NCBI GenBank assembly: GCA_002269645.1 | Contig: NIVC01003474.1 | Span: 1 to 64,000 of the forward strand | From: Macrostomum lignano | Taxonomy: Eukaryota | Reading direction: 5' to 3' | DNA: 64,000 nt | Part shown: piece after piece, positions 6,257 through 63,015 of the stretch | How the letters are laid out: every line of letters begins with the position of its first letter | Numbering within the stretch: the stretch's first letter is position 1 | Position numbers and translations under genes: made by a program | The notes under the pieces: generated by a model | Seen by the model: only the letters and a program-made list of their open reading frames with translations | Databases searched by the model: none | Told to the model about the DNA's origin: nothing

Positions 6257-6445
6257 ATTAAAATAGACAAACGCTGCACACGCAATTCGCACAATTCGTT
6301 TTAAGCTTTCTCTGCTGCATTCGCGAGATATATGATATTCACACGTTTTCTAGCTCCAAGCTTCCAAAATTTCCCCTCTGGACTTCCGAATTTCAAATTC
6401 AATTTAAATCAATTCAATTTTCTCCTTTGCGACATAAAATTTCAG

Positions 6446-21346: not shown

Positions 21347-21352
21347 ACTGAG

Positions 21353-21365
21353 ACCGCTGCCACCA
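21353..21365 (-). promoter_or_regulatory. Primer-binding site, tRNA-Leu-like
   Basis: Minus strand TGGTGGCAGCGGT, 1 nt from the 5' LTR; complementary to the 3' end ...ACCGCTGCCACCA known from metazoan tRNA-Leu. Confidence 0.8.
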
Positions 21366-21366
21366 G

Positions 21367-21566
21367 TGTAAGACCGTGGGTTGAATTGCAGTGACGAACA
21401 CAACAAGTGAGGAGACCTCACTGGCTCACGCCAATATATTTAATATACCAAAGTTGGGGTGGGTGTAACCACCCCAAGCACGCACACGCTGCAGCTCTAA
21501 ACGACATCCCCCAAAACAGCCAGACGTGCACATCTAAGTGCACGCGCACCAACAAGCCAGCCTACA
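21367..21566 (-). repeat. 5' LTR of the Gypsy element
   Basis: Same sequence as 16614-16813, followed by the ATGC TSD. Confidence 0.96.
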
Positions 21567-22417: not shown

Positions 22418-23470
22418 ATGAACAGCACCGACAATACTACTCATGTAGCAAATGATCCATGGTTCCACGACACCACCTGGAACTGGTTCATCTGGAACGT
22501 CTTCGTCTGGCTCTTTCCGCTGCTCTGTCTGGTCGGAGCGGTCGCGAACGCCATTTCCTTTTACGTGATCGTGTCCAACAGGAAGTCGTTTCCCTACGTC
22601 ACCAGGCAGTACCTCATCATCATCACTGCCAGTGACTTTCTCATTCTCACGTGCAAGGTGAGCACTCACTACTTTGGCTACATGGCATTCTTCGTGAAGA
22701 CGAACAAGTGGACCTGGTTTACTTTTCCAAGAGACTGGGGACTCGCTTGGTGCCTTGTGTACGACTTCTTTACCTACTATGCTGTCATGGGTGTTCAGTT
22801 CTTCCAACTGGGCCTCATGGCGGATCGGCTGATTGCAGTAGCGGCTCCGATGAAGGCCAAGGTAATCCTGACTCACCGCAGAAGTTGGGTGATGCTGAGC
22901 CTCATCACTGCAATGTCACTGCTATTGCCGATCATGTTCGTCGCGAATCGGACTTGGAACGACGCCAAAAACTCATGCGTTCTACGCAGTAAAGACTATC
23001 TAGTGAACGTGTACCAGCCGGCCGAGTTCTACTTCGGCAGGGTGTTCCTCGTTCTGGCGCTGACGTCGGGCACGGTGGTCATCTGCGTGCTGCTGGCCTG
23101 GAACAACAGGACCGCTCGGCGAATGCACTCCGACACGGCCGGCTCTGAGCAGCAGCAGCGGAGCAACCGAGAGCGACAGAGGTCGCTTGTTCGGATCAGC
23201 CTCATGCTGGTCTTCATCAATGTCTTCTTTCTGATCACGTCTCTGCCGTGGAGTGTAAGCGCCCTGCTAGAGCGCGAGATCATCGAGCGCATGGGAGAGA
23301 AGTTCAACTCTATAATATTATTTCACTTCAACTCGCTGCTGTACGTGAACAATGCTCTGTCCTGGGTGACGTACTTGATGGGACGAAACTTCCGAGAGGC
23401 GTTTCGCCGAGTGTGGCTGTCCCTGTGCTGCTGCTGCTGCGCCTCCTGCCGTCGTCGAGTGTACACTTAG
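22418..23470 (+). CDS. Class A (rhodopsin-like) GPCR copy B, intact, 350 aa, intronless
   Basis: N-glycosylation sequons, 7 hydrophobic segments, TM2 ASD, TM3 DRLIAV, TM6 LPW, TM7 NNALSW..Y..G.NFR, poly-Cys tail. Confidence 0.92.
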   Translation: MNSTDNTTHVANDPWFHDTTWNWFIWNVFVWLFPLLCLVGAVANAISFYVIVSNRKSFPYVTRQYLIIITASDFLILTCKVSTHYFGYMAFFVKTNKWTWFTFPRDWGLAWCLVYDFFTYYAVMGVQFFQLGLMADRLIAVAAPMKAKVILTHRRSWVMLSLITAMSLLLPIMFVANRTWNDAKNSCVLRSKDYLVNVYQPAEFYFGRVFLVLALTSGTVVICVLLAWNNRTARRMHSDTAGSEQQQRSNRERQRSLVRISLMLVFINVFFLITSLPWSVSALLEREIIERMGEKFNSIILFHFNSLLYVNNALSWVTYLMGRNFREAFRRVWLSLCCCCCASCRRRVYT

Positions 23471-23956: not shown

Positions 23957-24723
23957 CACTAGTAAATATAGCTTTTTGCAGCCCATTTGAGCCTACGCGC
24001 ACTAAATTTAATCCAAGATACGTTTGCCAATGTAATGGAGCTTTTGTCTATGGTAGCAAGGCTGCCACAGCGGCATTTGATTTGGTCCAACAAGCATCAA
24101 TTTGGTCCAAACCTCGTGAGCCATTCGGGAAATTCTTGCCTTCTCGCAACCGTCTGCAGGTTGTTCCGTACCGCTGGAATATCAGCGTCTCTACCAACAA
24201 TTTTCAGTCGCTTTTTCATAGCCCTGCCAATAGTCGAAATCCGATAACCAACTGTAGCTGTTCCTTCAACTTCTGCTGCATTTTTGCTCCGTTAACAAAG
24301 GGTTCGTCTCAACTGCATCGAGTAGCAGTTGGACCTGAGGCTCTCGCAACTTGCCTTGGCGATTTCCACCCTTTCGCAGGCGACGTCTGCCGCCAGTGGT
24401 TTCAACGCGCTGATGGATGCTGTAAACCATCTTTTCTGCAGCCTCGCAATGTTTTTTTGGTGTTCACCTCTGTCGAGTGCTTCGATCACAAGCCAATGGT
24501 TCGACAGCCTAGCACATGGTCCACAATTCTGGGGCTGATCTTGCTCCTCCGCAGCAGTTGCAAATGAAGCTATGGACCGAATTGATGCTTGTTGGATCAA
24601 ATGAAATGCTGCTGTGCCAGCCTTGCTACCATAGACAAAAGCTCCGTTACATTGGCAAACCTATCTTGGATTCACTCCAATGCGCGTAAGCCCAAATGGG
24701 CTGCAAAAAGCTATTTTTGTGTG
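23957..24723. mobile_element. MITE-like element with about 150-bp imperfect TIRs
   Basis: ATAGCTTTTTGCAGCCCATTT...TGGTCCA is mirrored at about 24565-24723; TSD not resolved. Confidence 0.65.
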
Positions 24724-26169
24724 ACTCGTAAACCTAAGCTGCAGCTTTTAGAGAAAAACCAACACTAATTAGCACCTAATACACTTTTCCCTGTAAATTA
24801 ATTGATGCTATATTCTAATGATATTCATCGACTCTATCAACTGATTTATGCAACATTTATCCAGGACTTACAGCCATTACTATACAAAAAGTCAGTATCC
24901 ATGCCTTTTTGCGAGCGCGTAAAAACCCTTTAACAATGAGAGTTTTATTCAGTCCAAATGCATAAATTTTGCTCCAAGTGAGCGGGTTAAAAGAAAAAAT
25001 CTGCGATTACTTTTTTGGAAAAGACTTTCAGAAACTTTTCCTGATGAAGACAAAAATCTGGTTCCGTCAGAATTGAACGGCAAACAGTCCGCTTGTCAGC
25101 ATTGTCCGCCCAACTCCGGATAAACCGGCTGAATCGTTCTTAGCAAAGAGTTTTTTCTTTCCGGCTTGTATCGATTTATACGTTTGTTTTACTAGGCCAT
25201 GCTTCCTGTGGAGTTCAACTTTTGAGCAACTCAAGTTTCTGTTCACGCACGATTAATTGACTCTCGCTGACGCGTCAATTAAAACTTATTTGCACCAATG
25301 AGGAAGTAATTTCTAAAGACAAATAGTAACCTTTAAAAATGACGATTTGTCGAATGCTGAGATAATTTCCGTAGCATTGTCGCAGCCTGACTTACGACTG
25401 ATTCCCGTCGCCAAGCTAAACAGCTTTTTGTGTGCCGCACTGCCACCTACCCAAGCTTGTCTTCCAAGCGACCCCTATCATCTTCGTCCGTCTTGTTGAT
25501 TGAAGTTCAAGACTTGCACAGCAGCCGTGGCGACTTGTACCTACCTGTGAGATCAAGGTGGGTCGATGATTTTTGAGCCATCTAAAGGCCATGCATAGTT
25601 TGGAAAGCGTTTTTGCGCGGGGCTCTGTCTGCAGTTTATTTCGTTCTTTCTGATCGTTTCTGTCTGATTTCTGTTTAGTTCCTTCGTGGCCTTTGAGCCT
25701 GCTTTTGTTTGGTTGTGCGTTTGAAAGACTTAATGACGAGCATCCGGCCCCGCTGATCGAATTCTTGTGCAAGTTTGATGCTTTTCGTTTCCTCATTGCG
25801 AAGGAGACGCAATTGCGAATGAAGTCTCATTGCGAAGGGACTTCCACATGGACATACCAGTATCCATGTACTATAACAAACTACTATAAAATTTATCGTT
25901 GCACCAGGACGTAAGTTTTCTGTTACTTAGCACTAAATTGGAAACCTCTTAGCATTGTGGCTTCGAGAAGTGCAAAATGTGCATTTAAAATCTTACATGC
26001 TAGAGAATGAAGAGTTCCACAACTAAAAAAACAATTAAAAACCGAAATTGCTACTTTAAGTAAAATATTAAAATATCTGAGCATTAATCTTTAGACAATA
26101 AAAGTGGAATCAATAAAGTCTCACCTTTTCCAAGTTATTACGGTAAATGCGCTCATATTCAGCAAAGCA

Positions 26170-27028
26170 AGCGATTCTCATTCTCACGTGCAAGGTGAGC
26201 ACTCACTACTTTGGCTACATGGCATTCTTCGTGAAGACGAACAAGTGGACCTGGTTCACTAATTCGAGAGGTTGGGGACTCGCTTGGTGCATTGTGTACG
26301 ACTTCTTCACCTACTATGGGCTGGTAGGATCCCAGTTTTTTCAACTGGGTCTCACGGTAGATCGGCTGATTGCGGTAGCGGCTCCGATGAAGGCCAAGGT
26401 GATTCTGACACATCGGAGAAGCTGGGTAATGCTGAGCATGTTCATGTTCATGTTCGTCGCGAATCGGACGTGGAACGACGCCACTAACAACTGTGGATTA
26501 CGAAGTGTCAACTATCTAGAGGTATACCAGCCGGCCGAGTTCTACTTCGGCAGGGTGTTCCTCGTTCTGGCGCTGACGTCGGGCACGGTGGCCATCTGCG
26601 TGCTGCTGGCCTGGAACAACAGGACCGCTCGGCGAATGCACTCCGACACGGCCGGCTCTGAGCAGCAGCAGCGGAGCAACCGAGAGCGACAGAGGTCGCT
26701 TGTTCGGATCAGCCTCATGCTGGTCTTCATCAACGTCTTCTTTCTGATCACGTCTCTGCCGTGGAGCATCGGCGCTCTGCTCGAAGACCAGCTGGTTACT
26801 GAACTTGGAGTCAACCCTTTCATATTGATGATGCGGCACTTCAACTCGCTGCTGTACGCGAACAACGCCCTGTCCTGGGTGACGTACTTGATGGGACGGA
26901 ACTTCCGAGAGGCTTTTTGCCGAGTGTGGCTGTCCCTGTGCTGCTGCTGCTGCTGCGCCTCCTGCCGTCGTCGACTGAACGCTTCAAGCAGCAGCTCGAC
27001 GGCGAGCACTCGACAGAGCGTACGTTAG
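26170..27028 (+). pseudogene. GPCR copy C, lacking N-terminus/TM1, with an in-frame TM4 deletion
   Basis: Homology starts at TTCTCATTCTCACGTGCAAG (TM2). TM4 is replaced by ATGTTC repeats. The frame is open to the stop at 27028. Confidence 0.8.
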
Positions 27029-34230: not shown

Positions 34231-35857
34231 GCAACAGACAACAGAAAACAGGAAACAGACAGCACAGGTAGCTCCGCACAGGCCAGCAGATCGAGTGCAA
34301 GTGCGGCAGAAGGAGAGCAAACCCAGAATAGAAGCCCTCGATCACAGAAAAGATCAATCCCGTCGGCTCAAGGTTGGTGTTATTTTTCAGCTCTCTTTTT
34401 TCTATTCTCTTCTCTCTCCCCACTCTCCTCAATCCCCTCTTCTCTTATCTTATCTTCTATCTTTTCTGTCATCTCTCGCCTCTCTTCTCTTCTGTCATCT
34501 CTTATCTTCTATTCCCTACCCTATCCACTCTCATCAGATCTGCAGCCATGAGCTGGATTCTTTATCTGGCCCATGACGTAAAAAGCTTGCCTATCCTTGC
34601 TCCACTGGAGCTTGCGGGAACGCCATCGCCGCACAACCTCCAGTTAAAAGTGGGTGCACCAATTATACTACTTACTGCGCAATGTAAATGCCAAGCAACT
34701 CTTTTCGAATTGGATTGAGGCAAAAATCGTGACAGAATCTGGCAAAGGGAAATCTTTGTCTCTGACTTAGCTGAGCTGGTGGGTTGAAATGATCTGACGG
34801 AGTCGATGACTTGCAATAATTGCGCCTATTCGGACTAATGAAGCTTCTGTTGAATGTAACTATGCTGTTCCATCCTTGGAGTCACAAAGTAATCATTTTG
34901 GATCCTTTCTATAACGCCATCGGTGCCACATTGAGAGTGTTTGAGTTGATAGAGCGGATCACAAATAGCAATCACAAATGTTTAAGAATCCTCTCGAATC
35001 CTTGATCAGGAGATGAAAAAGCTATTTTTTCTGGAAAGGTTTTAACGGGAAAATACATAATTGCTTAACAAATTGGGGCACATAGTGAAGCCTGGTTCTT
35101 GCAAATAAAAAATCCAAGGCACGAAAAGTACCCCCAGTTTTCCCTAGTCTTTTGGCTTATCTAGCTATTTTTATTGAAAACGAAACGCAAGCAGGTGTTT
35201 TACAAGCAAATCGACTGTTTGCTAAAGCTTATACAGTTACAGCACGCTGGAACATGAGCGCTAAATTTTTTTGGTGCGCAAACAAGAAGCTGTCACACCA
35301 GCCTTTATCATCGCTTTTATACTATGCATGAATGGCGTGAAGGTGTAAAAAAGCCGGATGGTAAGCTCACACGTGGCCTTGAATTTGTACAGGCAAAGCT
35401 TAAACTGTGTGATGCCGCGTGCGTGACTATAACAGCTTAGCTGTTCAATCATTCTCTGGATCGCATAACACATGTGTAGGAGACACAGTTTGTCGAAAAG
35501 CGAAAACGCAACACCAGGCTTCCGGCAAACACACGCGCGACACGCAATATTGTAAGGCAGCTGATACAAGGGACACAACTGAGAATACAGAGACACGTGA
35601 ATTGCATTAATAATTCAAGACCAGCCACTCGAAATTCTAAGCATCCAGCAGTGTCTTTCACAGGACAAAGGACAAAACACCCAATAAAATGAAGATGAGT
35701 TTGCAGCCCACTGATCTGGCTTAATATTTCTATTGCCGGCAGAGGCGTTACGAGCTACGTTGCATGGTTTCATGTCAGGTTCGTGTGTCTCAAGCAGGCT
35801 CGTAGGTTTGTAAACAAAAAATGGTAAAACGTTATCTACGTGTAAGGGAGCTCTCTC

Positions 35858-36082
35858 CAGGGGTTGCTTTCACAAACGTGAAATTTCACAACCGCTAAAT
35901 CACCTACTTTCATTAACGCGAAATTTCATAACCGCGAAACTTCACAACCGCTAAATGTCATCTACTTTCACAACCGCGAAACTTCATAACCGCGAAACTT
36001 CACAACCGCTAAAAAGACTGCCGTATATGAAAGTAAGTGCTTTTAGCGGTTGTGAAATTTCACGCTTGTGAAACCCACCCCT
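35858..36082. mobile_element. MITE rich in GAAA(T/C)TTCA(C/T)AACCGC repeats; its duplicate (about 51075-56660) is the target of the Spy-like element
   Basis: TIR GGGT(T/G)G(C/G)TTTCACAA.CGTGAAATTTCACAACCGCTAAA at both ends; internal short tandem units. Confidence 0.7.
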
Positions 36083-37516
36083 CTCTAGGACTTGACTTGA
36101 GCCGGTGCTGCTGTGGTACGTACGAGCGACCACGAGACTCGAATAATGAATAAAAAACTGAAAACCTGGTTCTCTACATGGATCGATCCGCCCTTAGTCT
36201 TGTTGGATTTTAAATTGACTTCTTCCCTTGTTGGATCCGGACTTCCACCAATAGGCCCTGAAACGTGGCGACTGTCCATCATGAACTGCTGTGGGCTTCA
36301 TATCGGAGTTGCCTGGATGCTTGGGTCTTAGGGAGCTCAGGGAGCGTAATCTCGGATCCAGGCTCACTCACCATGTCTCTGTCCTCAACGATATTGTACT
36401 TTCACCGCGCCATCTGATTACTTTTCACCTCTGAAGTCAACCTCCGAACCGTAGATACGATTGGTGCACGGAAAAAGACCTTTAGTATGACCTTTCCTTC
36501 CCTTCTGCTATGGAAGTGTTGCTGACGATACTGAGACTACATACTTCTCATGATTCCTTTCCAGTACCAAACAGACATAGAGCCCGTTCTATAAAGCCAT
36601 CGTAAGATAAGATCGTTCTTAGCTCCCATCTCCGCAGTGTAAAAGTTCCAACTTACGCTACGACAGCTTTATAGTACATGTACGACCCCAAAATGCTGAC
36701 TCCAGACATCGAGTCTTGGGTGTTGGAATATTCGCTAGGCAATATTTATTTCTCTGAAAGCGTTCTCCAACGATACGATCAAGGGTGTGGTCATGCTAGC
36801 TAGGCCCTCTCGGTGAGTAGCCTAGGTGATTCACTCCACTCATTCATGCAGCAGCGAAAGAAGATCAATAGCAGATCAAACGCAATATAGCAAAGAAGCA
36901 AGTGGGGTTCATTCGAGTGTAATGTATTTCGGCTAAAGTAAAAGGAACTATTGACAGAAGCATCATTGCTCCTCAGTTGCTCTACTGATCGATTAAGCAT
37001 CTCATCGATCAATACTTTCCCAAATTTTCATCCAACAAGCAAGGATAGTTTTCAAGGAGATTGATTGATTTTCAAATCTATGGAAATTTTTCCCAACGAA
37101 ATGTCCCGTTGTTAAAACAATCCGATATTGGTGAACTGAAGCAAATCAATTGAAGGCTCAATTAGACAGAAAACTGTAACAATGGCGTGTGAAAGATCAA
37201 ATGAATGGCACATTTCCGTTCTATACTAAAAACTGTGGGTGTAAAAACTCAAAGGATTAAACAGATTCCAATCGGCCTTGCAATTGTGAACAGAAAACTC
37301 GATGCATCGTTAAAAAATCTAGAAAAAGTTCGCGAAAACCAATGGGAACACCTCACAGCTGCAAAATAGGCTAGGCTATTCAGCACGCACCTAACCTTGA
37401 GATTTTTGGGTATAAATATCAGCTCAAACCAATCATGCACTCGAATGCTGAAGAATCGAATTCATGCTTCATTCTTGCTGAAGCAACACTAAGATTGCTT
37501 TGTTCAAACCGAGCAG

Positions 37517-38559
37517 ATGAACGAAACTAACTCTAGCAATCCTCAGGAGCCCTGGTTCCACGACCCCACCTGGAACTGGTTCATCTGGAACGTCTTCGTC
37601 TGGCTCTTTCCGCTGCTCTGTCTGGTCGGAGCGGTCGCGAACGCCGTTTCCTTCTACGTGATCGTGTCCAACAGGAAGTCGTTTCCCTACGTCACCAGGC
37701 AGTACCTCACCATCATCACTGCCAGTGACTTTCTCATTCTCACGTGCAAGGTGAGCACTCACTACTTTGGCTACATGGCATTCTACGTGAAGACGAACAA
37801 GTGGACCTGGTTTACTAATCCGAGAGGCTGGGGAATCGCTTGGTGCATCGTGTACGACTTCTTTACTATGGGCTGGTGGGATCCCAATTCTTCCAACTGG
37901 GTCTCACGGTGGATCGGCTGATTGCGGTAGCGGCTCCGATGAAGGCCAAGGTGATTCTGACGCATCGGAGAAGCTGGGTAATGCTGAGCCTCATCACTGC
38001 AATGGCGCTGCTACTGCCTATCATGTTCGTCGCGAATCGGACGTGGAACGACGCCACTAACAACTGTGGATTACGAAGTGTCAACTATCTAGTGAACGTG
38101 TACCAGCCGGCCGAGTTCTACTTCGGCAGGGTGTTCCTCGTTCTGGCGCTGACGTCGGGCACGGTGGTCATCTGCGTGCTGCTGGCCTGGAACAACAGGA
38201 CCGCTCGGCGAATGCACTCCGACACGGCCGGCTCTGAGCAGCAGCAGCGGAGCAACCGAGAGCGACAGAGGTCGCTTGTTCGGATCAGCCTCATGCTGGT
38301 CTTCATCAACGTCTTCTTTCTGATCACGTCTCTGCCGTGGAGTGTAAGCGCCCTGCTAGAGCGCGAGATCATCGAGCGCATGGGAGAGAAGTTCAACTCT
38401 ATAATATTATTTCACTTCAACTCGCTGCTGTACGTGAACAATGCTCTGTCCTGGGTGACGTACTTGATGGGACGAAACTTCCGAGAGGCGTTTCGCCGAG
38501 TGTGGCTGTCCCTGTGCTGCTGCTGCTGCGCCTCCTGCCGTCGTCGAGTGTACACTTAG
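37517..38559 (+). pseudogene. GPCR copy D, chimeric (F-like 5' half, B-like 3' half), 4-nt frameshift deletion near 37866
   Basis: TTTACTATGGG versus TTTACATACTATGGG in copy F; ORFs 37517-37921 and 37840-38559 are the two halves. Confidence 0.85.
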
Positions 38560-39045: not shown

Positions 39046-39812
39046 CACTAGTAAATATAGCTTTTTGCAGCCCATTTGAGCCTACGCGCACTAAATTTAA
39101 TCCAAGATACGTTTGCCAATGTAATGGAGCTTTTGTCTATGGTAGCAAGGCTGCCACAGCGGCATTTGATTTGGTCCAACAAGCATCAATTTGGTCCAAA
39201 CCTCGTGAGCCATTCGGGAAATTCTTGCCTTCTCGCAACCGTCTGCAGGTTGTTCCGTACCGCTGGAATATCAGCGTCTCTACCAACAATTTTCAGTCGC
39301 TTTTTCATAGCCCTGCCAATAGTCGAAATCCGATAACCAACTGTAGCTGTTCCTTCAACTTCTGCTGCATTTTTGCTCCGTTAACAAAGGGTTCGTCTCA
39401 ACTGCATCGAGTAGCAGTTGGACCTGAGGCTCTCGCAACTTGCCTTGGCGATTTCCACCCTTTCGCAGGCGACGTCTGCCGCCAGTGGTTTCAACGCGCT
39501 GATGGATGCTGTAAACCATCTTTTCTGCAGCCTCGCAATGTTTTTTTGGTGTTCACCTCTGTCGAGTGCTTCGATCACAAGCCAATGGTTCGACAGCCTA
39601 GCACATGGTCCACAATTCTGGGGCTGATCTTGCTCCTCCGCAGCAGTTGCAAATGAAGCTATGGACCGAATTGATGCTTGTTGGATCAAATGAAATGCTG
39701 CTGTGCCAGCCTTGCTACCATAGACAAAAGCTCCGTTACATTGGCAAACCTATCTTGGATTCACTCCAATGCGCGTAAGCCCAAATGGGCTGCAAAAAGC
39801 TATTTTTGTGTG
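39046..39812. mobile_element. Duplicate of the 23957-24723 MITE (offset 15089)
   Basis: Essentially identical sequence inside the segmental duplication. Confidence 0.65.
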
Positions 39813-41644: not shown

Positions 41645-42519
41645 ATTCTCATTCTCACGTGCAAGGTGAGCACTCATTACTTTGGCTACATGGCATTCTA
41701 GTTAAGACGAACAAGTGGACCTGGTTCACCAATCCGAGAGGTTGGATACTCGCTTGGTGCAATGTGTACGACTTCTTTACCTACTATGCTGTCATGGGTG
41801 TTCAGTTCTTCCAACTGGGTCTCACGGTACATCGGCTGATTGCGGTAGCGGCTCCGATGAAGGCCAAGGTGATCCTGACTCACCGCAGCAGCTGTCTGAT
41901 GCTGAGCCTCATCACTGCAATGTCACTGCTACTGCCGATCATGTTCGTCGCGAATCGGACTTGGAACGACGCCAAACACTCATGCGTTCTACGCAGTAAA
42001 GACTATCTAGTGAACGTGTACCAGCCGGCCGAGTTCTACTTCGGCAGGGTGTTCGTCGTTCTGGCGCTGACGTCGGGCACGGTGGCCATCTGCGTGCTGC
42101 TGGCCTGGAACAACAGGACCGCTCGGCGAATGCACTCCGACACGACCGGCTCTGAGTAGCAGCAGCGAAGCAACCGAGAGCGACAGAGGTCGCTTGTTCG
42201 GATCAGCCTCATGCTGGTCTTCATCAACGTCTTCTTTCTGATCACGTCTTTGCCGTGGAGCATCGGCGCTCTGCTCGAAGTCCAAATTCTAAATAAGCTC
42301 GGACTGAACTTCTTCATATTGATGATGCGGCACTTCAACTCGCTGCTGTACGCGAACAACGCCCTGTCCTGGGTGACGTACTTGATGGGACGGAACTTCC
42401 GAGAGGCGTTTCGCCGAGTGTGGCTGTCCCTGTGCTGCTGCTGCTGCGCCTCCTGCCGTCGTCGACTGAATGCTTCAAGCAGCAGCTCGACGGCGAGCAC
42501 TCGACAGAGCGTACGTTAG
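41645..42519 (+). pseudogene. GPCR copy E, 5' truncated, 1-nt deletion near 41698 and nonsense TAG at 42157-42159
   Basis: Same 5' truncation point as copy C; GAG TAG CAG replaces GAG CAG CAG. Confidence 0.88.
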
Positions 42520-50000: not shown

Positions 50001-51963
50001 AGCAACTCTTTTCGAATTGGATTGAGGCAAAAATCGTGACAGAATCTGGCAAAGGGAAATTTTTGTCTCTGACTTAGCTGAGCTGGTGGCTTGAAATGAT
50101 CTGACGGAGTCGATGACTTGCAATAATTGCGCCTATTCTGACTAATGAAGCTTCTGTTGAATGTAACTATGCTGTTCCATCCCTGGAGTCACAAGGTAAT
50201 CATTTTGGATCTTTTCTATAACGCCACCGGTCTAACATTGAGGGTGTTTGAGTTGATAGAGCGGATCACAAATAGCAATCACAAATGTTTAAGAATCCTC
50301 TCGAATCCTTGATCAGGAGATTAAAAAGCTATTTTTTCTGGAAAGGTTTTAACGGGAAAATACATAAAGTACCTCCAGTTTTCCCTAGTCTTTTGGCTTA
50401 TCTAGCTATTTTTATTGAAAACGAAACGCAAGCAGGTGTTTTACAAGCAAATCGACTGTTTGCTAAAGCTTATACAGTTACAGCACGCTGAAACATGAGC
50501 GCTAATTTTTTTTTTGGTGCACAAACAAGAAGCTGTCACACCAGCCTTTATCATCGCTTTTATACTATGCATGAATGGCGTGAAGGTGTAAAAAAGCCAG
50601 ATGGTAAGCTCACACGTGGCATTGGATTTGTACAGGCAAAGCTTAAACTGTGTGATGCCGAGTGCGTGACTATAACAGCTTAGTTGTTCAATCATTCTCT
50701 GGATCGCATAACACGTGTGTAGGAGACACAGTTTGTCGAAAAGCGAAAACGCAACACCGGGCTTCCGGCAAACACACGCGCGACACGCAATATTGTAAGG
50801 CAGCTGATACAATGGACACAACTGAGAATACAGAGACACGTGAATCGCATTAATAATTCAAGACCAGCCACTCGAAATTCTAAGCATCCAGCAGTGTCTT
50901 TCACAGGACAAGGACAAAACACCCGGTAAAATGAAGAAGATAAGTTTGCAGTCCACTGATCTGCCTTAATATTGCTCTTGCCGGCAGAGGCGTTACGTTG
51001 CATGGTTTCATGCCAGGCTCGTAGGTTTGTAAATAAAAAATGGTAAAACGATATCTACGTGTAAGGGGTCTCTCTGGTTGCTTTCACAAAGGCGAAAGAG
51101 GATGTGAACTTAAGCGCGATTTGGAAGCCGTGAGTCCAGCAACCAAACCGCTGCGAAATTCTCCCTATTCAGACCCAAAAAAGACAAGAAAAGCGTAATT
51201 GATCTTTCTTCCACCCCGGCCGCTTCTGCATGGGATAAATGGGGAAAAATGGGGATTTCATGTGAACTTAAGGCTCTGGAATGGAAGCGCTGGCCGATTG
51301 AGCCGGTTTCTCTATCGGATCTCTCTACTGGACCGAAAATGAGACAAGAATCGTTAAAAACCGCATCCCTTTTGTGTTGATGATTTTTACGGGCCATACT
51401 TGGGATTCTACATTAGTAGGCAAGATAGGCTGACAGAGATGCCGAGGGTGCTGTGCCTTTGTAATCATATGCCTAAATCTTATGGACCTAATATTGAAAT
51501 CGTCATTAATCGAGGCAGCCTCATTATATCCCGCACCCATATGTGCACGTAATTCTTGGCTAGCCAATATCATTTTATAATGAGTGTTCTTCACTTTTTA
51601 TTGTCCTGACACCTTGAACTTTTTTTTGCTGGGCAACGAGCATTTAAGTATTGATTACGCAATCTGAATCCCGCACCCATATGTGCACTGCATGTACATT
51701 TGCATGGCCGACGCTAAGTGTGTTAATAATACTGCGATTATCATTATAAAAGTGTTGAAGTATTTGGGCAGAAAGTTATTTTATATGTCAAAAAAGCTTG
51801 TCAGTAGCCTTCAAGACAGCATGCTGGACTCTAAAGTGCGTGACCATTAGCCATTTATATTTCGAAATCTATGCGTGCAATAATTTGGTGATGCACATTT
51901 TCTGATCGACTCTTGCGGCTCATTGTTACCTTCACTTTTCAATCTATGTAACTTAGCTTTGTC

Positions 51964-53719
51964 ATGTACTGGGCATGCCATCGATGTGGTAAACAGTTCA
52001 GCAATGAATTCAACCTCAAGAAACATCAGCAGACAACCAGGTGTTCGGTTTTAAAGGAAGCGACTTTCTTTGGCTCCTGCAAGTCATTCGCAGATGTGAG
52101 AGGTGTGCTGCAGCGTTCTCCAACCAAGGTTAAAAATTTTTTAAACCCGAATCTTTTTCCTGAACTTTTGGCTGACAAGCGCTTTAAGAAAGTCGTTGGA
52201 ATGTCTCGAGAGAACTTTGACAGCTTCAAAAGCCTCATCTCTGGCTCAGTACGCACTAGATTTCTAAGTCAAGAGAACAGAGTATTTCTTTACCTGAAAA
52301 AACTCCGCCCATGGCGTCAGCTTTGAAGCCATAGGAAACGATTTCAACATTTCTGCGCGCCGCGCTTGTGAAGTCTTTTGGGAGGTGGCCAAGGATCACT
52401 ACATCAACGACCCTTTTCAACCAAGGCTACTGTCATGTGCTCCGATTGAGCCAAGGAACTGGCAAAAGAAATTCAGCAACTGGCAACCGTCGTGGATATT
52501 TATGGCCGTTTTGTTTTCGAGGCACACATCTCGAACATATCGAGTCCTTCTTCGCCTCAGCGATTTACCGAATGGAAACCCTTTTGGATTCCACGATGCC
52601 GGTCTAAGGAGGCTACATGCCTACTACTCCTCGTCCAAAGTGGGTAGCCGAACAGCTGGCTGTGACTGCCATGTAATGACAGTTCTTTTGGTCCTAGGTC
52701 ATTATGCCTACGACCCAGATTCCTTTCGCCAACGATATCCTGAGCGCCGCTTCGTTGATACACAGCTTCCTAAAAGCCTCAACGCTAATCTTTACACCTC
52801 TCTACCTGCTGAGGAAAATTTTAGAACAGAGCCTCGTCAAGAGCATCGTTTAGGAGCAAAGGATGCCAAACAAACATCATCAAGAAGTTCAGAGCCGCAG
52901 CCTCTCTGTGGACTAAGAAATAGCGGAGCAGACTGCTATGCCTATTCTGCTATTCAGCTTCTTTACTGGATGGAGCAGAAGGGCCCATTAATGAGACGGG
53001 ACATAGCTAGCGACTTGCAAAGATCTTTACAGCTACTTTTTCATCAAATGCTAGCTCTAAAAAATACTTCTGCCGCAGAAGTACAAGGAATTATCAGGCG
53101 CATCTGGCCCGGCAGATTTGCTGCTGGTGAGCAGCACTGCTTTCTGGAGTTCTTGGAAGCCCTGCTTTCGACTCTCTCGGTTGCTAATGGCGCCCTTGCA
53201 GATGTTACTGCGCTCCGTAATTGTCGACGTTGTGGCTACAGCGCAGCCTCGATTCAAACAGGAACAATCAGAGAACAAATTCTTTGCGTTCCTCTCTCAG
53301 AGTACAGCAGGGCTCCGATTAGCCTTTACGATCTTTTGGAAGAGCGACTGCGACCACGCATTTCGCAGTGCGGCCAATTAGGATGCGAAGGCTTGATTGA
53401 AGAGCAGATTATTCTGTCAGCGGCCAAGTTTGCAATTACGAGTATTTACTTCAGCAGAACTCCAGAAAACTATAACACCGAAAAAATCAACACCCAAATA
53501 CGGTACTCACCAAGATCTGAGAGTAATTCCGACTTCGGCAGTCCTGTGATAGTGATATGCCACTATGGCAGATCTCTCCATCGCGGGCACTACACTACCA
53601 GTGTTTGGCATGACAATGTATGGTGGTTGATTGGCGATTCCAGAATTGTGCCCAACTGCAATCCGTTTCTCCGGGATGCACAAAATATCGTTGCTGTAGT
53701 TGTGCAAAAGAAAGACTGA
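51964..53719 (+). CDS. Transposase-derived zinc finger + HTH + SWIM-like segment fused to a USP (peptidase C19) domain; one extra C near 52309 splits the ORF
   Basis: CHRC..H..C finger; LSQENRVFLYLKKLR|HGVSFEAIGNDFNIS (Harbinger/ISL2EU-type HTH); SRH..TY and KVGSRTAGCDCHV..VL..LG; Cys box GLRNSGADCYAYSAIQLL; EQH..EFL; CRRC; His box HYGRSLHRGHY...W...GD. About 584 aa if the extra base is removed. Confidence 0.8.
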
Positions 53720-54128
53720 TCGTCCTTTCACCAGATCGTAGACCCGAGCTAGACAAGTTTTAGTTTTTCCTTGCGATGCACTCCAAATTTCAAAAGATTT
53801 ATACCTACCTATGAACTTTTGCTTGCCACTACTTGCTCTGTTACATGTACATGCTTGTTAATATTTGCTCATGTACTTCTGCTTGAAAATATTTGCTCAT
53901 GCACTTTTGGTTCCCCTTATTTGCAAATGCACTGTATCATACATTACTAAAATCGTGCGTTTTAATATTTCATTAAACCTGTTCAGAAAAGTCTAATACA
54001 GATACTTAAAAAGATATTTTAAGTACAAAGATCGTTAAATACAATTACAGAAATTTTTAAAACATTCTTCAACATAAAGACTCAAGGCAGCTTTACCGGC
54101 CTGTTTCATCGGTCAGATTCTGATTGTC

Positions 54129-56322
54129 GGTCCAGTAGAGAGATCCGATAGAGAAACCGGCTCAATCGGCCACGCTTCCATTTCAGAGCCTTAAGTTCAC
54201 ATGAAATCCCCATTTTTCCCCATTTATCCGATTCAGGGAGACCAAATGATACAGAGATGCGGTTTTCGACGATTCCTGTCTCATTGTTGGTCCAGTAGAG
54301 AGATCCGATAGAGAAACCGGCTCAATCGGCCACTGCTTCCATTCCAGAGCCTTAAGTTCACATGAAATCCCCATTTTTCCCCATTTATCCCATTCAGGGA
54401 GACCAAATGATAGAGAGATGCGGTTTTCGACGATTCCTGTCTCATTGTTGGTCCAGTAGAGAGATCCGATAGAGAAACCGGCTCAATCGGCCACTGCTTC
54501 CATTCCAGAGCCTTAAGTTCACATGAAATCCCCATTTTTCCCCATTTATCCCATTCAGGGAGACCAAATGATAGAGAGATGCGGTTTTCGACGATTCTTG
54601 TCTCATTGTCGGTCCAGTAGAGAGATCCGATAGAGAAACCGGCTCAATCGGCCACCGCTTCCATTTCAGAGCCTTAAGTTCACATGAAATCCCCATTTTT
54701 CCCCATTTATCCCATTCAGGGAGACCAAATGATAGAGAGATGCGGTTTTCGACGATTCTTGTCTCATTGTCGGTCCAGTAGAGAGATCCGATAGAGAAAC
54801 CGGCTCAACCGGCCACTGCTTCCATTCAAGAGCCTTAAGTTCACATGAAATCCCCATTTTTCCCCATTTATCCGATTCAGGGAGACCAAATGATAGAGAG
54901 ATGCGGTTTTCGACGATTCTTGTCTCATTGTCGGTCCAGTAGAGAGATCCGATAGAGAAACCGGCTCAATCGGCCACTGCTTCCATTCCAGAGCCTTAAG
55001 TTCACATGAAATCCCCATTTTTCCCCATTTATCCCATTCAGGGAGACCAAATGATAGAGAGATGCGGTTTTCGACGATTCTTGTCTCATTGTCGGTCCAG
55101 TAGAGAGATCCGATAGAGAAACCGGCTCAATCGGCCACGCTTCCATTTCAGAGCCTTAAGTTCACATGAAATCCCCATTTTTCCCCATTTATCCGATTCA
55201 GGGAGACCAAATGATAGAGAGATGCGGTTTTCGACGATTCCTGTCTCATTGTTGGTCCAGTAGAGAGATCCGATAGAGAAACCGGCTCAATCGGCCACTG
55301 CTTCCATTCCAGAGCCTTAAGTTCACATGAAATCCCCATTTTTCCCCATTTATCCCATTCAGGGAGACCAAATGATAGAGAGATGCGGTTTTTGACGATT
55401 CTTGTCTCATTGTCGGTCCAGTAGAGAGATCCGATAGAGAAACCGGCTCAATCGGCCACTGCTTCCATTCCAGAGCCTTAAGTTCACATGAAATCCCCAT
55501 TTTTCCCCATTTATCCCATTCAGGGAGACCAAATGATAGAGAGATGCGGTTTTCGACGATTCTTGTCTCATTGTCGGTCCAGTAGAGAGATCCGATAGAG
55601 AAACCGGCTCAATCGGCCACTGCTTCCATTCCAGAGCCTTAAGTTCACATGAAATCCCCATTTTTCCCCATTTATCCCATTCAGGGAGACCAAATAATAG
55701 AGAGATGCGGTTTTCGACGATTCTTGTCTCATTGTCGGTCCAGTAGAGAGATCCGATAGAGAAACCGGCTCAATCGGCCACCGCTTCCATTTCAGAGCCT
55801 TAAGTTCACATGAAATCCCCATTTTTCCCCATTTATCCCATTCAGGGAGACCAAATGATAGAGAGATGCGGTTTTCGACGATTCTTGTCTCATTGTCGGT
55901 CCAGTAGAGAGATCCGATAGAGAAACCGGCTCAATCGGCCACCGCTTCCATTTCAGAGCCTTAAGTTCACATGAAATCCCCATTTTTCCCCATTTATCCC
56001 ATTCAGGGAGACCAAATGATAGAGAGATGCGGTTTTCGACGATTCTTGTCTCATTGTCGGTCCAGTAGAGAGATCCGATAGAGAAACCGGCTCAACCGGC
56101 CACTGCTTCCATTCAAGAGCCTTAAGTTCACATGAAATCCCCATTTTTCCCCATTTATCCGATTCAGGGAGACCAAATGATAGAGAGATGCGGTTTTCGA
56201 CGATTCTTGTCTCATTGTCGGTCCAGTAGAGAGATCCGATAGAGAAACCGGCTCAATCGGCCACTGCTTCCATTCCAGAGCCTTAAGTTCACATGAAATC
56301 CCCATTTTTCCCCATTTATCCC
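54129..56322. repeat. 161-bp tandem satellite (about 13.6 copies) inside the right arm of the Spy-like element
   Basis: Unit CGGTCCAGTAGAGAGATCCG...TTGTCTCATTGT with few substitutions; a single inverted partial unit at about 51231-51367 in the left arm. Confidence 0.97.
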
Positions 56323-57934
56323 ATGCAGAAGCGGCCGGGGTGGAAGAAAGATCAATTACGCTTTTCTTGTCTTTTTTGGGTCTGAATAGGGAGAATTTCG
56401 CAGCGGTTTGGTTGCTGGACTCACGGCTTCCAAATCGCGCTTAAGTTCACATCCTCTTTCACAACCGCTAATCACCTTCTTTCATAAACGCGAAATTTCA
56501 TAACCGCGAAACTTCACAACCGCTAAATCACCTACTTTCATAAGCACTAAACTTCACAAACGCGAAACTTCACAACCGCTAAAAAGACTGCCGTATATGA
56601 AAGTAAGTGCAAAAATTTTAGCGGTTGTGAAATTTCACGCTTGTGAAACCCACCCCTCTCTAGGACTTGACTTGAGACGGTGCTTCTGGTACGTGCGAGC
56701 GTAATCATATTGGCTTCTAGTTTTTAAAGCAACCACGAGATTCGAATAATGAATAAAAAAACTGAAACCCTGGTTCTCTCCATGGATCGATCCGCCCTTA
56801 GTCTTATTGGATTTTAAATTGACTTCTTCCCTTGTTGGATCCGGACTTCCACAAATAGGCGCTGAAGCGTGGCGACTGTCCATCATGAACTGCTGTGGGC
56901 TTCGTATCGGAGTTGCCTGGATGCTTGGATCTTGCGACTAAATTATCTTAGGGAGCTCAGGGAGCGTAATCTGGGATCCAGGCTCACTCACCATGTCTCT
57001 GTCCTCAACGATATTGTATATGTACTTTCACCGCGCCATCTGATGACTTTTTTCACCTCTGAAGTCAACCTCCGAACGTAGATACGATTGGTGCACGGAA
57101 AAGACCTTAAGTATGACCTTGCCCTCCCGTCTGCTGTGGAAGTCTTGCTGACGATACTGAGACTACTCTCATGATTCCTTTCCAGTACCAAACAGACATA
57201 ATGCTGACTCCAGACATCGTCGAGTCTTGGGTGTTGGAATATTCTCTAGGCAATATTTATTTCTCTGAAAGCGTTCTCCAACGATACGATCAAGGGTGTG
57301 GTCATGCTAGCTAGGCCCTCTCGGTGAGTAGCCTAGGTGATTCACTCCAATCATTCATGCAGCAGCGAAAGAATGTCAATAGCAGATCAAAAGCAATATA
57401 GCAAAGAAGCAAGTGGGTTTATTCGAGATGCCTGGATATTGATATGTGTAATATATTTCGGCTAAAGTAAAAGGAACTATTGACAGAAGCATCATTGCTC
57501 CTCAGTTGCTTTACTGATTGATTAAGCATCTCATCGATCAATACTTTCCCAAAGTTTCATCCAACAAGCAAGGAAAGTTTTCAGGGGGATTGATTGATTT
57601 TCAAATCTATGGAAATTTTTCCCAACGAAATGTCCAGTTGCTAAAACAATCCGATATTGGTGAACTGAAGCAAATCAATTGAAGGCTCAATTAGACATAA
57701 AACTGTAACAATGGCGTGTGAAAGATCAAATGAATGGCACATATCAGTTCTATCATAAAATCTTTCGGTGAAAATACTCAAAAGATTAAACGGATTCTAA
57801 TCGGCCTTGCAAGCGTGAAGAGAGAACTGGATGCATCGTTAAAAAACCAAGAAAAAAGTTCGCGAAACCAATGGGAACACCTCACAGCTGCGGAATAGGC
57901 TATTCAGCACACACCTAACCTTGAGATTTTTGGG

Positions 57935-58039: not shown

Positions 58040-59116
58040 ATGAACGAAACAAACTCTAGCAATCCTCAGGAGCCCTGGTTCCACGACCCCAACTGGAACT
58101 GGTTCATCTGGAACGTCTTCGTCTGGCTTTTTCCGCTGCTCTGTCTGGTCGGAGCGGTCGCGAACGCCGTCTCCTTCTACGTGATCGTGTCCAACAGGAA
58201 GTCGTTTCCCTACGTCACCAGGCAGTACCTCACCATCATCACTGCCAGTGACTTTCTCATTCTCACCTGCAAGGTGAGCACTCACTACTTTGGCTACATG
58301 GCATTCTACGTGAAGACGAACAAGTGGACCTGGTTCACTAATCCGAGAGGTTGGGGAATCGCTTGGTGCATTGTGTACGACTTCTTTACATACTATGGGC
58401 TGGTAGGATCTCAGTTTTTTCAACTGGGTCTCACGGTAGATCGGCTGATTGCGGTAGCGGCTCCGATGAAGGCCAAGGTGATTCTGACACATCGGAGAAG
58501 CTGGGTAATGCTGAGCCTCATCACTGCAATGGCACTGCTACTGCCGATCATGTTCGTCGCGAATAGAACGTGGAACGACGCCACTAACAACTGTGGATTA
58601 CGAAGTGTCAACTATCTAGTGAACGTGTACCAGCCGGCCGAGTTCTACTTTGGCAGGGTGTTCCTCGTTCTGGCGCTGACGTCGGGCACGGTGGTCATCT
58701 GCGTGCTGCTGGCCTGGAACAACAGGACCGCTCGGCGAATGCACTCCGACACGGCCGGCTCTGAGCAGCAGCAGCGGAGCAACCGAGAGCGACAGAGGTC
58801 GCTTGTTCGGATCAGCCTCATGCTGGTCTTCATCAACGTCTTCTTTCTGATCACGTCTCTGCCGTGGAGCATCGGCGCTCTACTAGAAGACCAGCTGGTT
58901 ACTGAACTTGGAGTCAACCCTTTCATATTGATGATGCGGCACTTCAACTCGCTGCTGTACGCGAACAACGCTCTGTCCTGGGTGACGTACTTGATGGGAC
59001 GGAACTTCCGAGAGGCGTTTCGCCGAGTGTGGCTGTCCCTGTGCTGCTGCTGCTGCGCCTCCTGCCGTCGTCGACTGGACGCTTCGGGCAGCAGCTCGAC
59101 GGCGAGCACTCGATAG
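58040..59116 (+). CDS. Class A GPCR copy F, intact, 358 aa
   Basis: Full 7TM ORF with the same motifs as copy B. Confidence 0.93.
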   Translation: MNETNSSNPQEPWFHDPNWNWFIWNVFVWLFPLLCLVGAVANAVSFYVIVSNRKSFPYVTRQYLTIITASDFLILTCKVSTHYFGYMAFYVKTNKWTWFTNPRGWGIAWCIVYDFFTYYGLVGSQFFQLGLTVDRLIAVAAPMKAKVILTHRRSWVMLSLITAMALLLPIMFVANRTWNDATNNCGLRSVNYLVNVYQPAEFYFGRVFLVLALTSGTVVICVLLAWNNRTARRMHSDTAGSEQQQRSNRERQRSLVRISLMLVFINVFFLITSLPWSIGALLEDQLVTELGVNPFILMMRHFNSLLYANNALSWVTYLMGRNFREAFRRVWLSLCCCCCASCRRRLDASGSSSTASTR

Positions 59117-61899: not shown

Positions 61900-63015
61900 A
61901 TGAATAACACAACAGCTGCTGGCCTAGAGAGCGAAAGAAATACAACCAGCGACTTTGGCGATCCTATATGGAACCAGTTTGCCTGGGCCGTCTTCATATG
62001 GCTGTTTCCGCCGCTCTGTCTGGTTGGAACAATCGCCAACGCCGTCTCCTTCTACGTGATCGTGTCCAACAGGAAGTCGTTTCCCTATGTCACCCGGCAG
62101 TACCTCAGCATCATCACTGCCAGCGACTTTCTCATACTCACGTGCAAAGCGAGTACACATTATCTGATCTATATCAAAAGCGTATCGGACTCCAACACTA
62201 TCTTTCTGTCACCGAGAGCCTGGGGACTCACCTGGTGCATTGTTTACGACTTCTTTACCTACTATGCGCTGGTGGGATCCCAGTTCTTCCAGCTGGGCCT
62301 CACGGTGGATCGCCTAATAGCCGTAGCCGCTCCGATGAAGGCCAAGGTGATTCTGACGCATCGAAGAAGCTGGGTGCTGTTAGGCCTCATCACTACGATG
62401 TCGCTGCTACTGCCAGTCATGTTCGTCGCGAACCGAACGTGGCATAACGGCAATTGTGTGTTCCGCAGCCAACAGTACTTCGAAATTGTGTACAAGTCGG
62501 TAGAGTTCTACTTTGGCAGGGTGTTCCTGGTCTCCGCTTTAACCTCTGGCACAGTGGCCATCTGCCTGCTGCTGGCCTGGAACAACAGGACCGCTAGGAG
62601 GTTGGACATCGAGGTGAATGCCACTGAATCGCAACAGCTGCGTCACAAATATCTGGTCCGCATCAGCCTGATGCTGGTCTTTATAAATTTAATCTTTCTG
62701 GCAACAGCCCTGCCATGGACCATTTCAATTCTAACGGAGGACCAGTTGACAATAGTAATGGGCCAGGATTTTTACTATCGAATGCTCCGCCATTTCAACT
62801 CGATCCTGTACGTAAACAACGCAGTAAGTTGGATTGCCTATTTCATGGGCCGCAATTTTCGCGAGGCCTTCTGCCGCTCTTTGCGAACAGAGCAGCTGCG
62901 CCGCCGCTGGCAACAAAGGAGCGGTCAAAGGCCGTCCGGCCTGGCGCCGCAAGCAAGGGCCGCCGAGATCGAGGACTTGCAGGTGGAAACGACGCGGTTT
63001 TTAGCGGAACCATAG
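61900..63015 (+). CDS. Class A GPCR copy G, intact, 371 aa, the most diverged paralog
   Basis: Full 7TM ORF; DRLIAV, ALPW, NNAVSW..YFMGRNFR; different ICL3 and no poly-Cys tail. Confidence 0.93.
   Translation: MNNTTAAGLESERNTTSDFGDPIWNQFAWAVFIWLFPPLCLVGTIANAVSFYVIVSNRKSFPYVTRQYLSIITASDFLILTCKASTHYLIYIKSVSDSNTIFLSPRAWGLTWCIVYDFFTYYALVGSQFFQLGLTVDRLIAVAAPMKAKVILTHRRSWVLLGLITTMSLLLPVMFVANRTWHNGNCVFRSQQYFEIVYKSVEFYFGRVFLVSALTSGTVAICLLLAWNNRTARRLDIEVNATESQQLRHKYLVRISLMLVFINLIFLATALPWTISILTEDQLTIVMGQDFYYRMLRHFNSILYVNNAVSWIAYFMGRNFREAFCRSLRTEQLRRRWQQRSGQRPSGLAPQARAAEIEDLQVETTRFLAEP

Follow-up and report, generated by a model that had tools for sequence, protein, structure and literature searches.

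A Spy-like PHIS transposon copy in Macrostomum lignano from a family whose transposase probably includes a C-terminal ubiquitin-specific protease domain

The window analysed here is the whole 64,000-nucleotide stretch of Macrostomum lignano contig NIVC01003474.1 (positions 1 to 64,000 of the forward strand). One DNA transposon bounded by terminal inverted repeats (TIRs) spans positions 51098-56456 of the window (5,359 bp) and encodes transposase remnants followed by a ubiquitin-specific protease (USP) domain. A first-pass annotation had described this locus as a Spy-type element in which transposase-type sequence runs, in one stop-free frame, into an intronless USP carried as cargo, and had proposed the combination as a new system. 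Our analysis leads to a related but different reading, in which the locus is probably a non-autonomous copy of a Spy-like PHIS transposon whose family transposase has a built-in C-terminal USP, predicted to be active and to act in cis. Autonomous members of this family appear, from the sequences of relatives, to encode one protein of ~950-1050 aa, with the order C2H2 finger, helix-turn-helix (HTH), DDE core, Cys/His module, low-complexity linker and USP. Because the USP forms the C-terminal end of the transposase protein itself, it is not a passenger, and the description of it as cargo is abandoned.

Termini and insertion site of the element

The two TIRs (Table 1) pair over 273 nt with 6 mismatches (97.8% identical), and their outer 191 nt match perfectly. 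The terminal 32-mer occurs in the window only at the two TIR ends, with 0 occurrences in shuffled sequence, and the boundaries first annotated are upheld. A terminal 13-mer, ATGTGAACTTAAG, is present in 17 copies, all within the element and all oriented inward, 2 of them at the left end and 15 at the right. The right-end copies fall one per unit of a tandem array that repeats the inner TIR in units of 161 bp and gives inverted matches to 51226-51370, and each unit holds the 13-mer in its + strand form, CTTAAGTTCACAT. From their usual look, the arrayed 13-mers are candidate reiterated transposase-binding sites. Between the left TIR and the start codon, no similarity of positions 51371-51963 to a related element on the metagenome contig L001 was detectable.

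The mode of insertion is demonstrated by a paralogous empty site, a segmental duplicate of the insertion locus within the same window. The left flank of the element (50600-51097) matches 35357-35883 at 89% and the right flank (56457-57000) matches 35884-36380 at 86%, and the two halves are contiguous at 35883/35884 (..CGTGAAA/TTTCACAACC..; junction ..CACAAACGTGAAA/TTTCACAACCGC..), where an uninterrupted AAA/TTT lies at 35881-35886. By this comparison the element extends precisely from 51098 to 56456 and was inserted exactly between the AAA and the TTT of a 16-bp satellite unit, with zero bases duplicated or lost and no target-site duplication (TSD). As the flank matches abut exactly in the empty site, the element inserted later than the duplication. 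The related element on L001 begins GAGGATGT(C/G)AACTTA(A/G)G, with AAA immediately before it. The satellite itself (TTTCAYAACCGCGAAA) lies at 56458-56648 and 35868-36073, where it is organised in a higher-order 56-bp unit followed by its own inverted copy; the junctions between its units form AAATTT sites, in one of which the transposon landed. The duplication that supplies the empty site (35357-36380 versus 50600-57000) is 86-89% identical, and larger duplicated blocks are suggested by identical 161-aa open reading frames (ORFs) at 24082-24567 and 39171-39656. An Rfam search of the window gave no match.

Reading frames and state of the window copy

The coding region of the window copy is broken in two places. 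The first ORF, which includes an N-terminal finger recognised by Pfam zf-C2H2 (E=4.4e-5), loses frame near 52309-52322 through a +1 frameshift (a one-base insertion), and translation from the window ATG halts at 52326. The second ORF, 52385-53719, continues the first across the frameshift as 444 stop-free codons. It has no in-frame upstream ATG, its first Met being residue 40, and this, together with the frameshift, makes it most likely that the USP is unexpressed from the window copy, which probably expresses neither transposase nor USP. When the two frames are joined, aa 5-161 of the window protein are 61% identical to aa 7-164 of P0001, a 560-aa metagenomic protein encoded on L001. The similarity then breaks at a deletion junction, ..LLSCAPI/EPRNW.., so that what follows LLSCAPI, EPRNWQKKFSNWQPSWIF.., corresponds to the region around and after the P0001 end. 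The DDE core, the equivalent of P0001 aa ~165-550 with D197, D291 and E372, is gone. The deletion is in frame and removed ~385 codons (~1.2 kb), possibly at a short LSC microhomology. The window and L001 were compared by local blastn and tblastn; global MAFFT mis-aligns across the deletion.

The window copy is thus a dead, non-autonomous derivative, with its DDE core deleted and its frame shifted. The sequence that was first annotated as transposase-type is indeed transposase-derived, and it comprises only the zinc finger/HTH part and a C-terminal Cys/His module. The openness of the 444-codon frame probably reflects the youth of the copy (TIRs 97.8% identical) and not selection on it. At best, the intact TIRs and 13-mer array would allow the copy to be mobilised in trans.

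A complete USP domain in frame with transposase sequence

The C-terminal part of the 444-codon frame is a genuine and complete USP (peptidase C19) domain, in frame with the transposase sequence. It matches Pfam UCH PF00443 with E=2.1e-10 and 41.1 bits against a cut-off of 23.9, and the match extends from aa 175 to 422 of the ORF and from position 1 to 236 of the 254-position profile. The Cys box CGLRNSGADCY (aa 175-185) supplies N179 of the oxyanion hole and the nucleophile C184 (52934-52936), and the QQD-EFL box is present as GEQHCFLEFL (aa 248-257), with Gln250 and Glu255. The zinc ribbon is formed by C280 and C283 (CRRC, aa 280-283) and by C329 and C334 (QCGQLGC, aa 328-334). The His box VICHYGRSLHRGHY (aa 390-403) contains His393 and the catalytic H402 (53588-53590), and WWLIGDS (aa 413-419) contains the catalytic D418 (53636-53638). 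In an 18-sequence alignment of relatives, the N, C, H, H, Q and E residues, D418 and the four zinc cysteines are invariant or nearly so. The domain is colinear with its relatives and uninterrupted, and therefore has no intron.

The fold agrees with the sequence assignment. The best PDB sequence match for the domain is USP15, and an AlphaFold2 model built from the 18-sequence alignment has a pLDDT of 86.6 and a pTM of 0.87. Foldseek returned 204 PDB matches at E<=0.001, and the best 50 of these 204 are all USP-family chains (TM 0.64-0.73, E 1e-13 to 1e-16), led by USP35, USP2, USP46, USP21 and USP18; for USP35, USP2, USP46 and USP21 the values are E~1e-16 and TM 0.66-0.73. The first-pass annotation is therefore confirmed on the stop-free frame, on every USP motif it listed, on the coordinates it gave and on the lack of introns, with the UCH profile and the predicted structure both in accord.

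Table 1. Coordinates of the element, its coding parts and its insertion site in the window.
Feature	Position	Strand	Details
Left TIR	51098-51370	+	begins GAGGATGTGAACTTAAGC; 13-mer ATGTGAACTTAAG twice, at 51102 and 51260
5' internal non-coding region, presumed promoter/5' untranslated region	51371-51963	+	~0.6 kb
Transposase N-terminus	51964-52326	+	start codon, C2H2 finger (51976-52026), first half of HTH
Rest of HTH region and deletion junction	52385-52453	+	..ISARRACEVFWEVAKD.. starts just upstream in frame
Transposase C-terminal module	52454-52792	+	NW..WQPSWIF..RVLLRLSD..GNPFGF..SKVGSRTAGCDCHV..LGHYAYDPDSFRQRYPERRFVDTQLPKSLNANL; matches transposase C-termini
Low-complexity linker, transposase to USP	52793-52906	+	from alignments
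USP (peptidase C19) domain and stop codon	52907-53719	+	Pfam UCH PF00443
3' internal non-coding region	53720-54118	+	0.4 kb; 28-bp direct repeat at 53852-53913
Tandem array, 13.7 copies of 161-bp unit	54119-56328	.	TRF score 4217, 97% matches
Right TIR	56184-56456	-	inverted match to left TIR
Host AAA half of AAA/TTT target	51095-51097	.	left flank; by empty-site comparison
Host TTT half of target	56457-56459	.	right flank; by empty-site comparison
Paralogous empty site	35357-36380	+	segmental duplicate of insertion locus, same window

The native transposase and its C-terminal module

The part of the transposase that the window copy has lost can be read in its relatives. P0001 has a DDE core with D197 in GDHTY, D291 in FDRGY and R368(3)E372, and related transposases retain both the R(3)E and the DxGY motif. 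The profile matches of P0001 are weak (HTH_Tnp_4 E=2e-4 and DDE_Tnp_4 E=0.011, both below the cut-off); another relative, P0034, matches DDE_Tnp_4 with 32.4 bits against a cut-off of 24.8. The catalytic spacing is D(93)D(80)E in P0001 and D(93)D(81)E in P0007. The apparent stop of P0001 is an in-frame change of TGG to TGA that the homologues P0004 and L008 read through, and past it L001 continues into the same C-terminal module as the window copy; the native protein is therefore one ORF. An intron between this stop and the module in L001 was considered as well, and is ruled out by the in-frame TGG-to-TGA change and by the read-through in P0004 and L008.

An exhaustive HMMER search of the 444-aa frame against 1.84 billion representative proteins gave 61 matches of two kinds, the first of which covers residues ~22-145, the transposase C-terminus. 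This module matches the C-termini of DDE_Tnp_4-type transposases of 750-1075 aa (P0005, P0007, P0026, P0029, P0033, P0034 and P0050), with the consensus ..EP.NW...FG.W.PRR....PS.HS..(12-30)..N..GF....GY.C....C..G.R..GCC.HV.....LG.Y...P..F.S.YK..H..D.....SLN..L, and the module of P0005 gives a marginal SWIM-finger match.

The best USP matches in the same search include PIF1-helicase+UCH proteins (P0036, P0053 and P0054) and an endonuclease/exonuclease/phosphatase+UCH protein (P0057). These four are Helentron-type architectures, and fit the HELIANO report of UCH in HLE2 subgroups (PMC11417382). That the Spy-like USP sits among transposon-borne USPs suggests domain exchange between transposon classes, here between rolling-circle and cut-and-paste elements, as judged from search matches. 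Two further USP proteins were observed in passing. P0041 (1918 aa) has an unusual architecture in which a USP domain recurs six times in tandem, almost unchanged, once every 307 aa (Pfam UCH 723 bits, 6 stretches), and a stand-alone USP family, P0006/P0067, has 7 near-identical members; the sequence upstream of its USP (L010, 1-740) contains tandem repeats of ~100 bp per unit and no transposase.

Recurrence of the transposase-USP fusion

Sequence comparison indicates that the USP is linked to the transposase in three further lineages (P0002/L003, L008 and the P0007 cluster), and so points beyond a one-off capture and beyond the single copy from which the element was first described. P0002 begins with a transposase tail (..LGHYSYEPDSFRQRFPSRRF..NLNASL) and continues into a USP (Pfam UCH 55 bits); over residues 101-441, P0002 shares 43% identity with the window copy (E=2e-87). 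The contig that encodes it, L003, was obtained from the sample that also yielded L001 and is 95% identical to the L001 3' end where they overlap, and the two together allow the order zinc finger-HTH-DDE-module-USP to be reconstructed for that lineage. In L008, from an unrelated sequencing run, the module and the USP Cys box (..GLRNRGLQCYAN..) share a single 1.3-kb contig with the C-terminal half of the DDE core, which has 59% identity with P0001 aa 362-560. Another USP copy, with 33-37% identity, is found on L009, from a run whose accession neighbours that of L008.

The third lineage supplies intact proteins. The cluster represented by P0007 comprises 20 sequences at >=90% identity, and ~15 of these are intact ORFs of 1048-1050 aa found in several ENA/TARA metagenome assemblies. 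Each such ORF encodes, in one frame, the HTH, the DDE core, the module, a basic linker and a USP, and P0007 matches Pfam UCH with E=2.8e-12 and 47 bits over profile positions 2-253 of 254. In this ENA/TARA family, a second ORF of 580-592 aa lies upstream of the 1048-aa ORF across a 60-nt gap (L002 202-1944 and L004 115-1893), and contains two C2H2 fingers and long acidic GDPN repeats. The equivalent region lies within the single transposase ORF in P0026, P0029 and P0050, and the true ENA/TARA protein may therefore reach ~1650 aa; alternatively, the arrangement may include a short intron or depend on readthrough.

Less sensitive searches recovered little of the family. A word-indexed search with the 584-aa corrected protein, a method nearly blind to this family, matched P0001 only; with alignment A3 it gave 3 matches, and with the trimmed transposase alignment A5 only P0001 and one weak DDE_Tnp_4 protein. 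A scan of JGI metagenome contigs with the window+P0002 alignment gave 334 pattern sites and zero relatives.

Selection on the USP

Between the window copy and L001/L003, the non-coding parts of the element are unalignable except for the termini, and synonymous sites are saturated, with a proportion of synonymous differences (pS) of 0.77-0.85 (0.77 in the USP). The corresponding proportion of nonsynonymous differences (pN) is 0.16 in the transposase tail, 0.29 in the zinc finger-HTH part and 0.36 in the USP, and the USP pN between the window copy and L009 is 0.47. Because pS is saturated but USP pN is held at 0.36-0.47, the USP has been maintained by long-term purifying selection, although its rate of evolution is somewhat above that of the DNA-binding part. 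In the ENA family, dN/dS over the whole ORF is 0.21-0.27, except in the two closest pairs (3 and 7 differing sites). A separate observation concerns L002 and L004-L007, in which the USP dS of 0.035-0.05 is about half the transposase dS of 0.08-0.10 on the same contig pairs; the lower USP dS may stem from recombination or gene conversion between copies.

Proposed mechanism and alternative explanations

A mechanism can be proposed for the intact protein. By analogy with PHIS, the N-terminal fingers and HTH would bind the terminal and subterminal 13-mer repeats, and the DDE core would cut bluntly, excise the element and integrate it at AAA/TTT. The tethered USP, with its complete Asn/Cys/His/Asp centre and its zinc-ribbon fingers for holding ubiquitin, would strip ubiquitin in cis. 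The most likely substrate would be the transposase or transpososome itself, which would thereby be shielded from ubiquitin-proteasome turnover. Alternatively, the USP could act on chromatin or repair factors that carry ubiquitin where the element is excised or inserted. Protection of the transposase and loss of repressive histone ubiquitination had both been suggested as possible roles in the first-pass annotation. We infer the enzymatic activity, its substrate and its benefit to transposition from the conserved architecture, and a precedent exists, as the stabilisation of transposition proteins is the proposed role of the VTD and OTU deubiquitinases (DUBs) of Helentrons (PMC9741609).

Several observations weigh against a USP that is integral to the transposase. 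The window copy is defective. Five of the related transposases (P0026, P0029, P0050, P0033 and P0034) end right after the module and its SLN motif, without a USP, which means that transposases of this clade can do without the USP, an addition found in only part of the clade. The USP of P0007 is just 22% identical to that of the window, though colinear end to end, and for this reason a single origin of the fusion is plausible and not proven. TIRs were sought in the ENA/TARA contigs L002 and L004-L007 and none were captured, the contigs being colinear to their ends; for this family, its status as a transposable element, its termini and its target site are likewise not proven. Finally, NG86 dN/dS in the ENA family is 0.33-0.87 for the USP and 0.15-0.20 for the transposase (six informative pairs), where the USP values draw on only ~20-25 substitutions and are read as weaker constraint, not as a proven difference. 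The USP might be dispensable or drifting in some lineages.

These observations bear most directly on the possibility that the USP is decaying or is a non-catalytic ubiquitin-binding or scaffold module, one that steers the transposase to ubiquitinated chromatin. The relaxed constraint relative to the transposase in the ENA family (USP dN/dS up to 0.74-0.87), the degenerate QQD/E box of P0007 (GRFQEARLFF) and the many related transposases without a USP would all suit such a role, which is nevertheless unlikely given that every lineage examined, P0007 included, retains the oxyanion Asn together with the catalytic Cys, His and Asp/Asn, residues that pseudo-enzymes usually lose. Still less probable is a self-processing protease that frees the transposase from its C-terminal domain, or from the N-terminal acidic ORF of L002. 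Viral DUBs are often polyprotein proteases as well (PMC9741609), and in the ENA family the 580-aa ORF adjoins the 1048-aa ORF upstream, but the linkers of the window copy, P0002 and P0007 contain no LRGG-like or GG motif, and a USP fold with zinc-ribbon fingers is suited to holding the ubiquitin body. A one-off transduplication, in which a single copy took a host USP fragment in the manner of a Pack-MULE and the in-frame junction is accidental, can practically be set aside despite the rearranged state of the window copy (internal deletion and frameshift) and the known capture of host fragments by DNA transposons, since three other lineages, whose samples are unrelated, show the same junction following ..SLN..L, intact 1048-aa fusion ORFs exist, and the closest relatives of the USP are carried by these elements and are not cellular USPs.

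A transposase with a built-in, catalytically competent USP thus accounts best for the data, and a bolder version of it can be put forward more tentatively, at somewhat less than even odds in our judgement. The element may represent a deep, multi-host Spy-like lineage with a permanently fused, active USP, drawn from a pool shared with Helentrons, whose transposition depends on the built-in DUB. If true, the family would offer the first case of an intrinsic deubiquitinase in a cut-and-paste DDE transposase, and would provide independent evidence, from an unrelated mechanism, that escape from host ubiquitination is a general need of eukaryotic DNA transposons. Unrelated DNA transposons have each gained a protease directed at ubiquitin or ubiquitin-like proteins (Helentrons, Ginger, MULE, CACTA and now a Spy-like DDE family), and a USP tethered covalently to a simple cut-and-paste transposase would be the cleanest case in which to ask why DNA transposons carry DUBs. 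Spy transposition can be assayed in human cells (PMC11304231), which, with the transposase-USP architecture, makes this question directly testable. The architecture of PHIS transposases is extended by the Cys/His C-terminal module and the USP, and domain exchange is suggested by the USP pool that rolling-circle elements have in common with cut-and-paste ones. For annotation, the family calls for caution, as a 'USP gene' without introns in an invertebrate genome may be a piece of a transposon.

Neighbouring features of the window

The Spy-like element is located between two G-protein-coupled receptor (GPCR) paralogues, within the duplicated block. These belong to a tandem set of intronless rhodopsin-type genes on the + strand (22418-23470, 26147-27028, 37840-38559, 41659-42159, 58040-59116 and 61900-63015), which match Pfam 7tm_1 with E values of 1e-10 to 4e-14 and of which some are truncated. 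The interior of a Ty3/Gypsy-type long terminal repeat retrotransposon occupies 16850-21421 on the - strand, with a GC content of 59-64% against ~45% for the genome, and carries a gag-like ORF, aspartyl protease, reverse transcriptase, RNase H and integrase (RVT_1, RT_RNaseH_2, rve and Integrase_H2C2) in long open frames. A 494-aa ORF on the + strand (1236-2720) has a weak N-terminal PAN_1 match (E=3.4e-4, 20.8 bits, under the 21.4-bit cut-off), and after the PAN region come ~40 mucin-like TTTTTP(T/A/V) repeats. A glycine-rich ORF of 254 aa with GGGGG runs (6427-7191, + strand) has no Pfam match.

Comparison with known transposon systems

Insertion between AAA and TTT without a TSD defines Spy (Han et al. 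2014, PMC4122938), and has been confirmed experimentally for cgSpy (PMC11304231). The element in the window inserts in the same way, and shares with Spy elements (PMC4122938, PMC11304231) invertebrate-type hosts and TIRs of variable length, which appear to have a similar G(G/A)(G/A) start. In both, one long ORF encodes DNA-binding motifs at the N-terminus and a DDE core of IS5/Harbinger type, an organisation seen for the present family in the relatives P0007, P0026 and P0050. The PHIS features (DDE_Tnp_4, HTH_Tnp_4 and R(3)E) are likewise present in relatives, the region being lost from the window copy. Compared with the Spy TIR consensus 5'-GGANNNNG-3', the GGA of the window terminus GAGGATGTGAAC is offset by 2 nt; the oyster cvSpy TIR likewise starts with GAG.

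The differences from Spy are nonetheless considerable. Described Spy transposases have ~580-700 aa and consist of a DNA-binding domain and DDE core only, whereas those of the present family have ~1000 aa and add the conserved Cys/His C-terminal module and the C-terminal USP. The published spacing, D(79-80)D(44-62)E, contrasts with D(93)D(80-81)E here. The present element also has conspicuous subterminal repeats in many copies, and no subrepeats were reported for long TIRs in the Spy study (PMC4122938). Because the DDE spacing lies outside the published Spy signature, 'Spy-like PHIS lineage', of cut-and-paste type, appears the safer label than 'Spy', and its basis is the choice of target site, the presence of TIRs and the coding of the transposase in one ORF. 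The first-pass assignment to Spy thus stands for the AAA/TTT insertion without TSD, as read from the empty site, and falls short on the catalytic spacing. Within PHIS, the sister group is ISL2EU, the name under which oyster Spy families originally entered Repbase (PMC4122938). ISL2EU has a 2-bp AT TSD, a THAP domain and a second ORF with a YqaJ exonuclease (PMC4482050), and none of these was found in the window element, which has no TSD, a C2H2 and not a THAP finger, and no second ORF.

The placement of a DUB in the same frame as the transposition enzyme recalls Helentron and HLE2 elements with UCH, OTU or VTD domains (PMC11417382, PMC9741609), and UCH (USP) is stably carried by HLE2 Helentron subgroups (PMC11417382). 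Helentrons, in contrast, encode a RepHel HUH nuclease/helicase, move by rolling-circle transposition, lack TIRs and use another target, whereas the present family is of the DDE cut-and-paste type; an ORF and Pfam scan of the window element found no Rep (HUH) or PIF1-like helicase, features seen only in the separate proteins P0036 and P0053. Among cut-and-paste elements, Ulp1 (C48) and OTU proteases occur in Ginger1, MULE (KI-MULE) and CACTA DNA transposons (PMC2836005, PMC8978399), which resemble the present family as DDE elements stably associated with a cysteine protease directed at ubiquitin or ubiquitin-like proteins. They differ from it in their protease clans (CE/C48 and OTU, as opposed to USP/C19), in their transposase superfamilies, and in that their protease is often a separate ORF, not a C-terminal fusion.

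Within the searchable full-text literature (Repbase and Dfam lay outside this scope), no report of a USP in Spy, ISL2EU or PHIS elements was found, and the Spy, PHIS and cgSpy papers make no mention of a protease or ubiquitin domain. The novelty first claimed is borne out to this extent, and because Helentrons already carry UCH (PMC11417382) it is narrower than a new system. We rate as new the fusion of a USP to a PHIS/Spy-like DDE transposase, within what is already a known theme of DUBs in transposons and not a new category.

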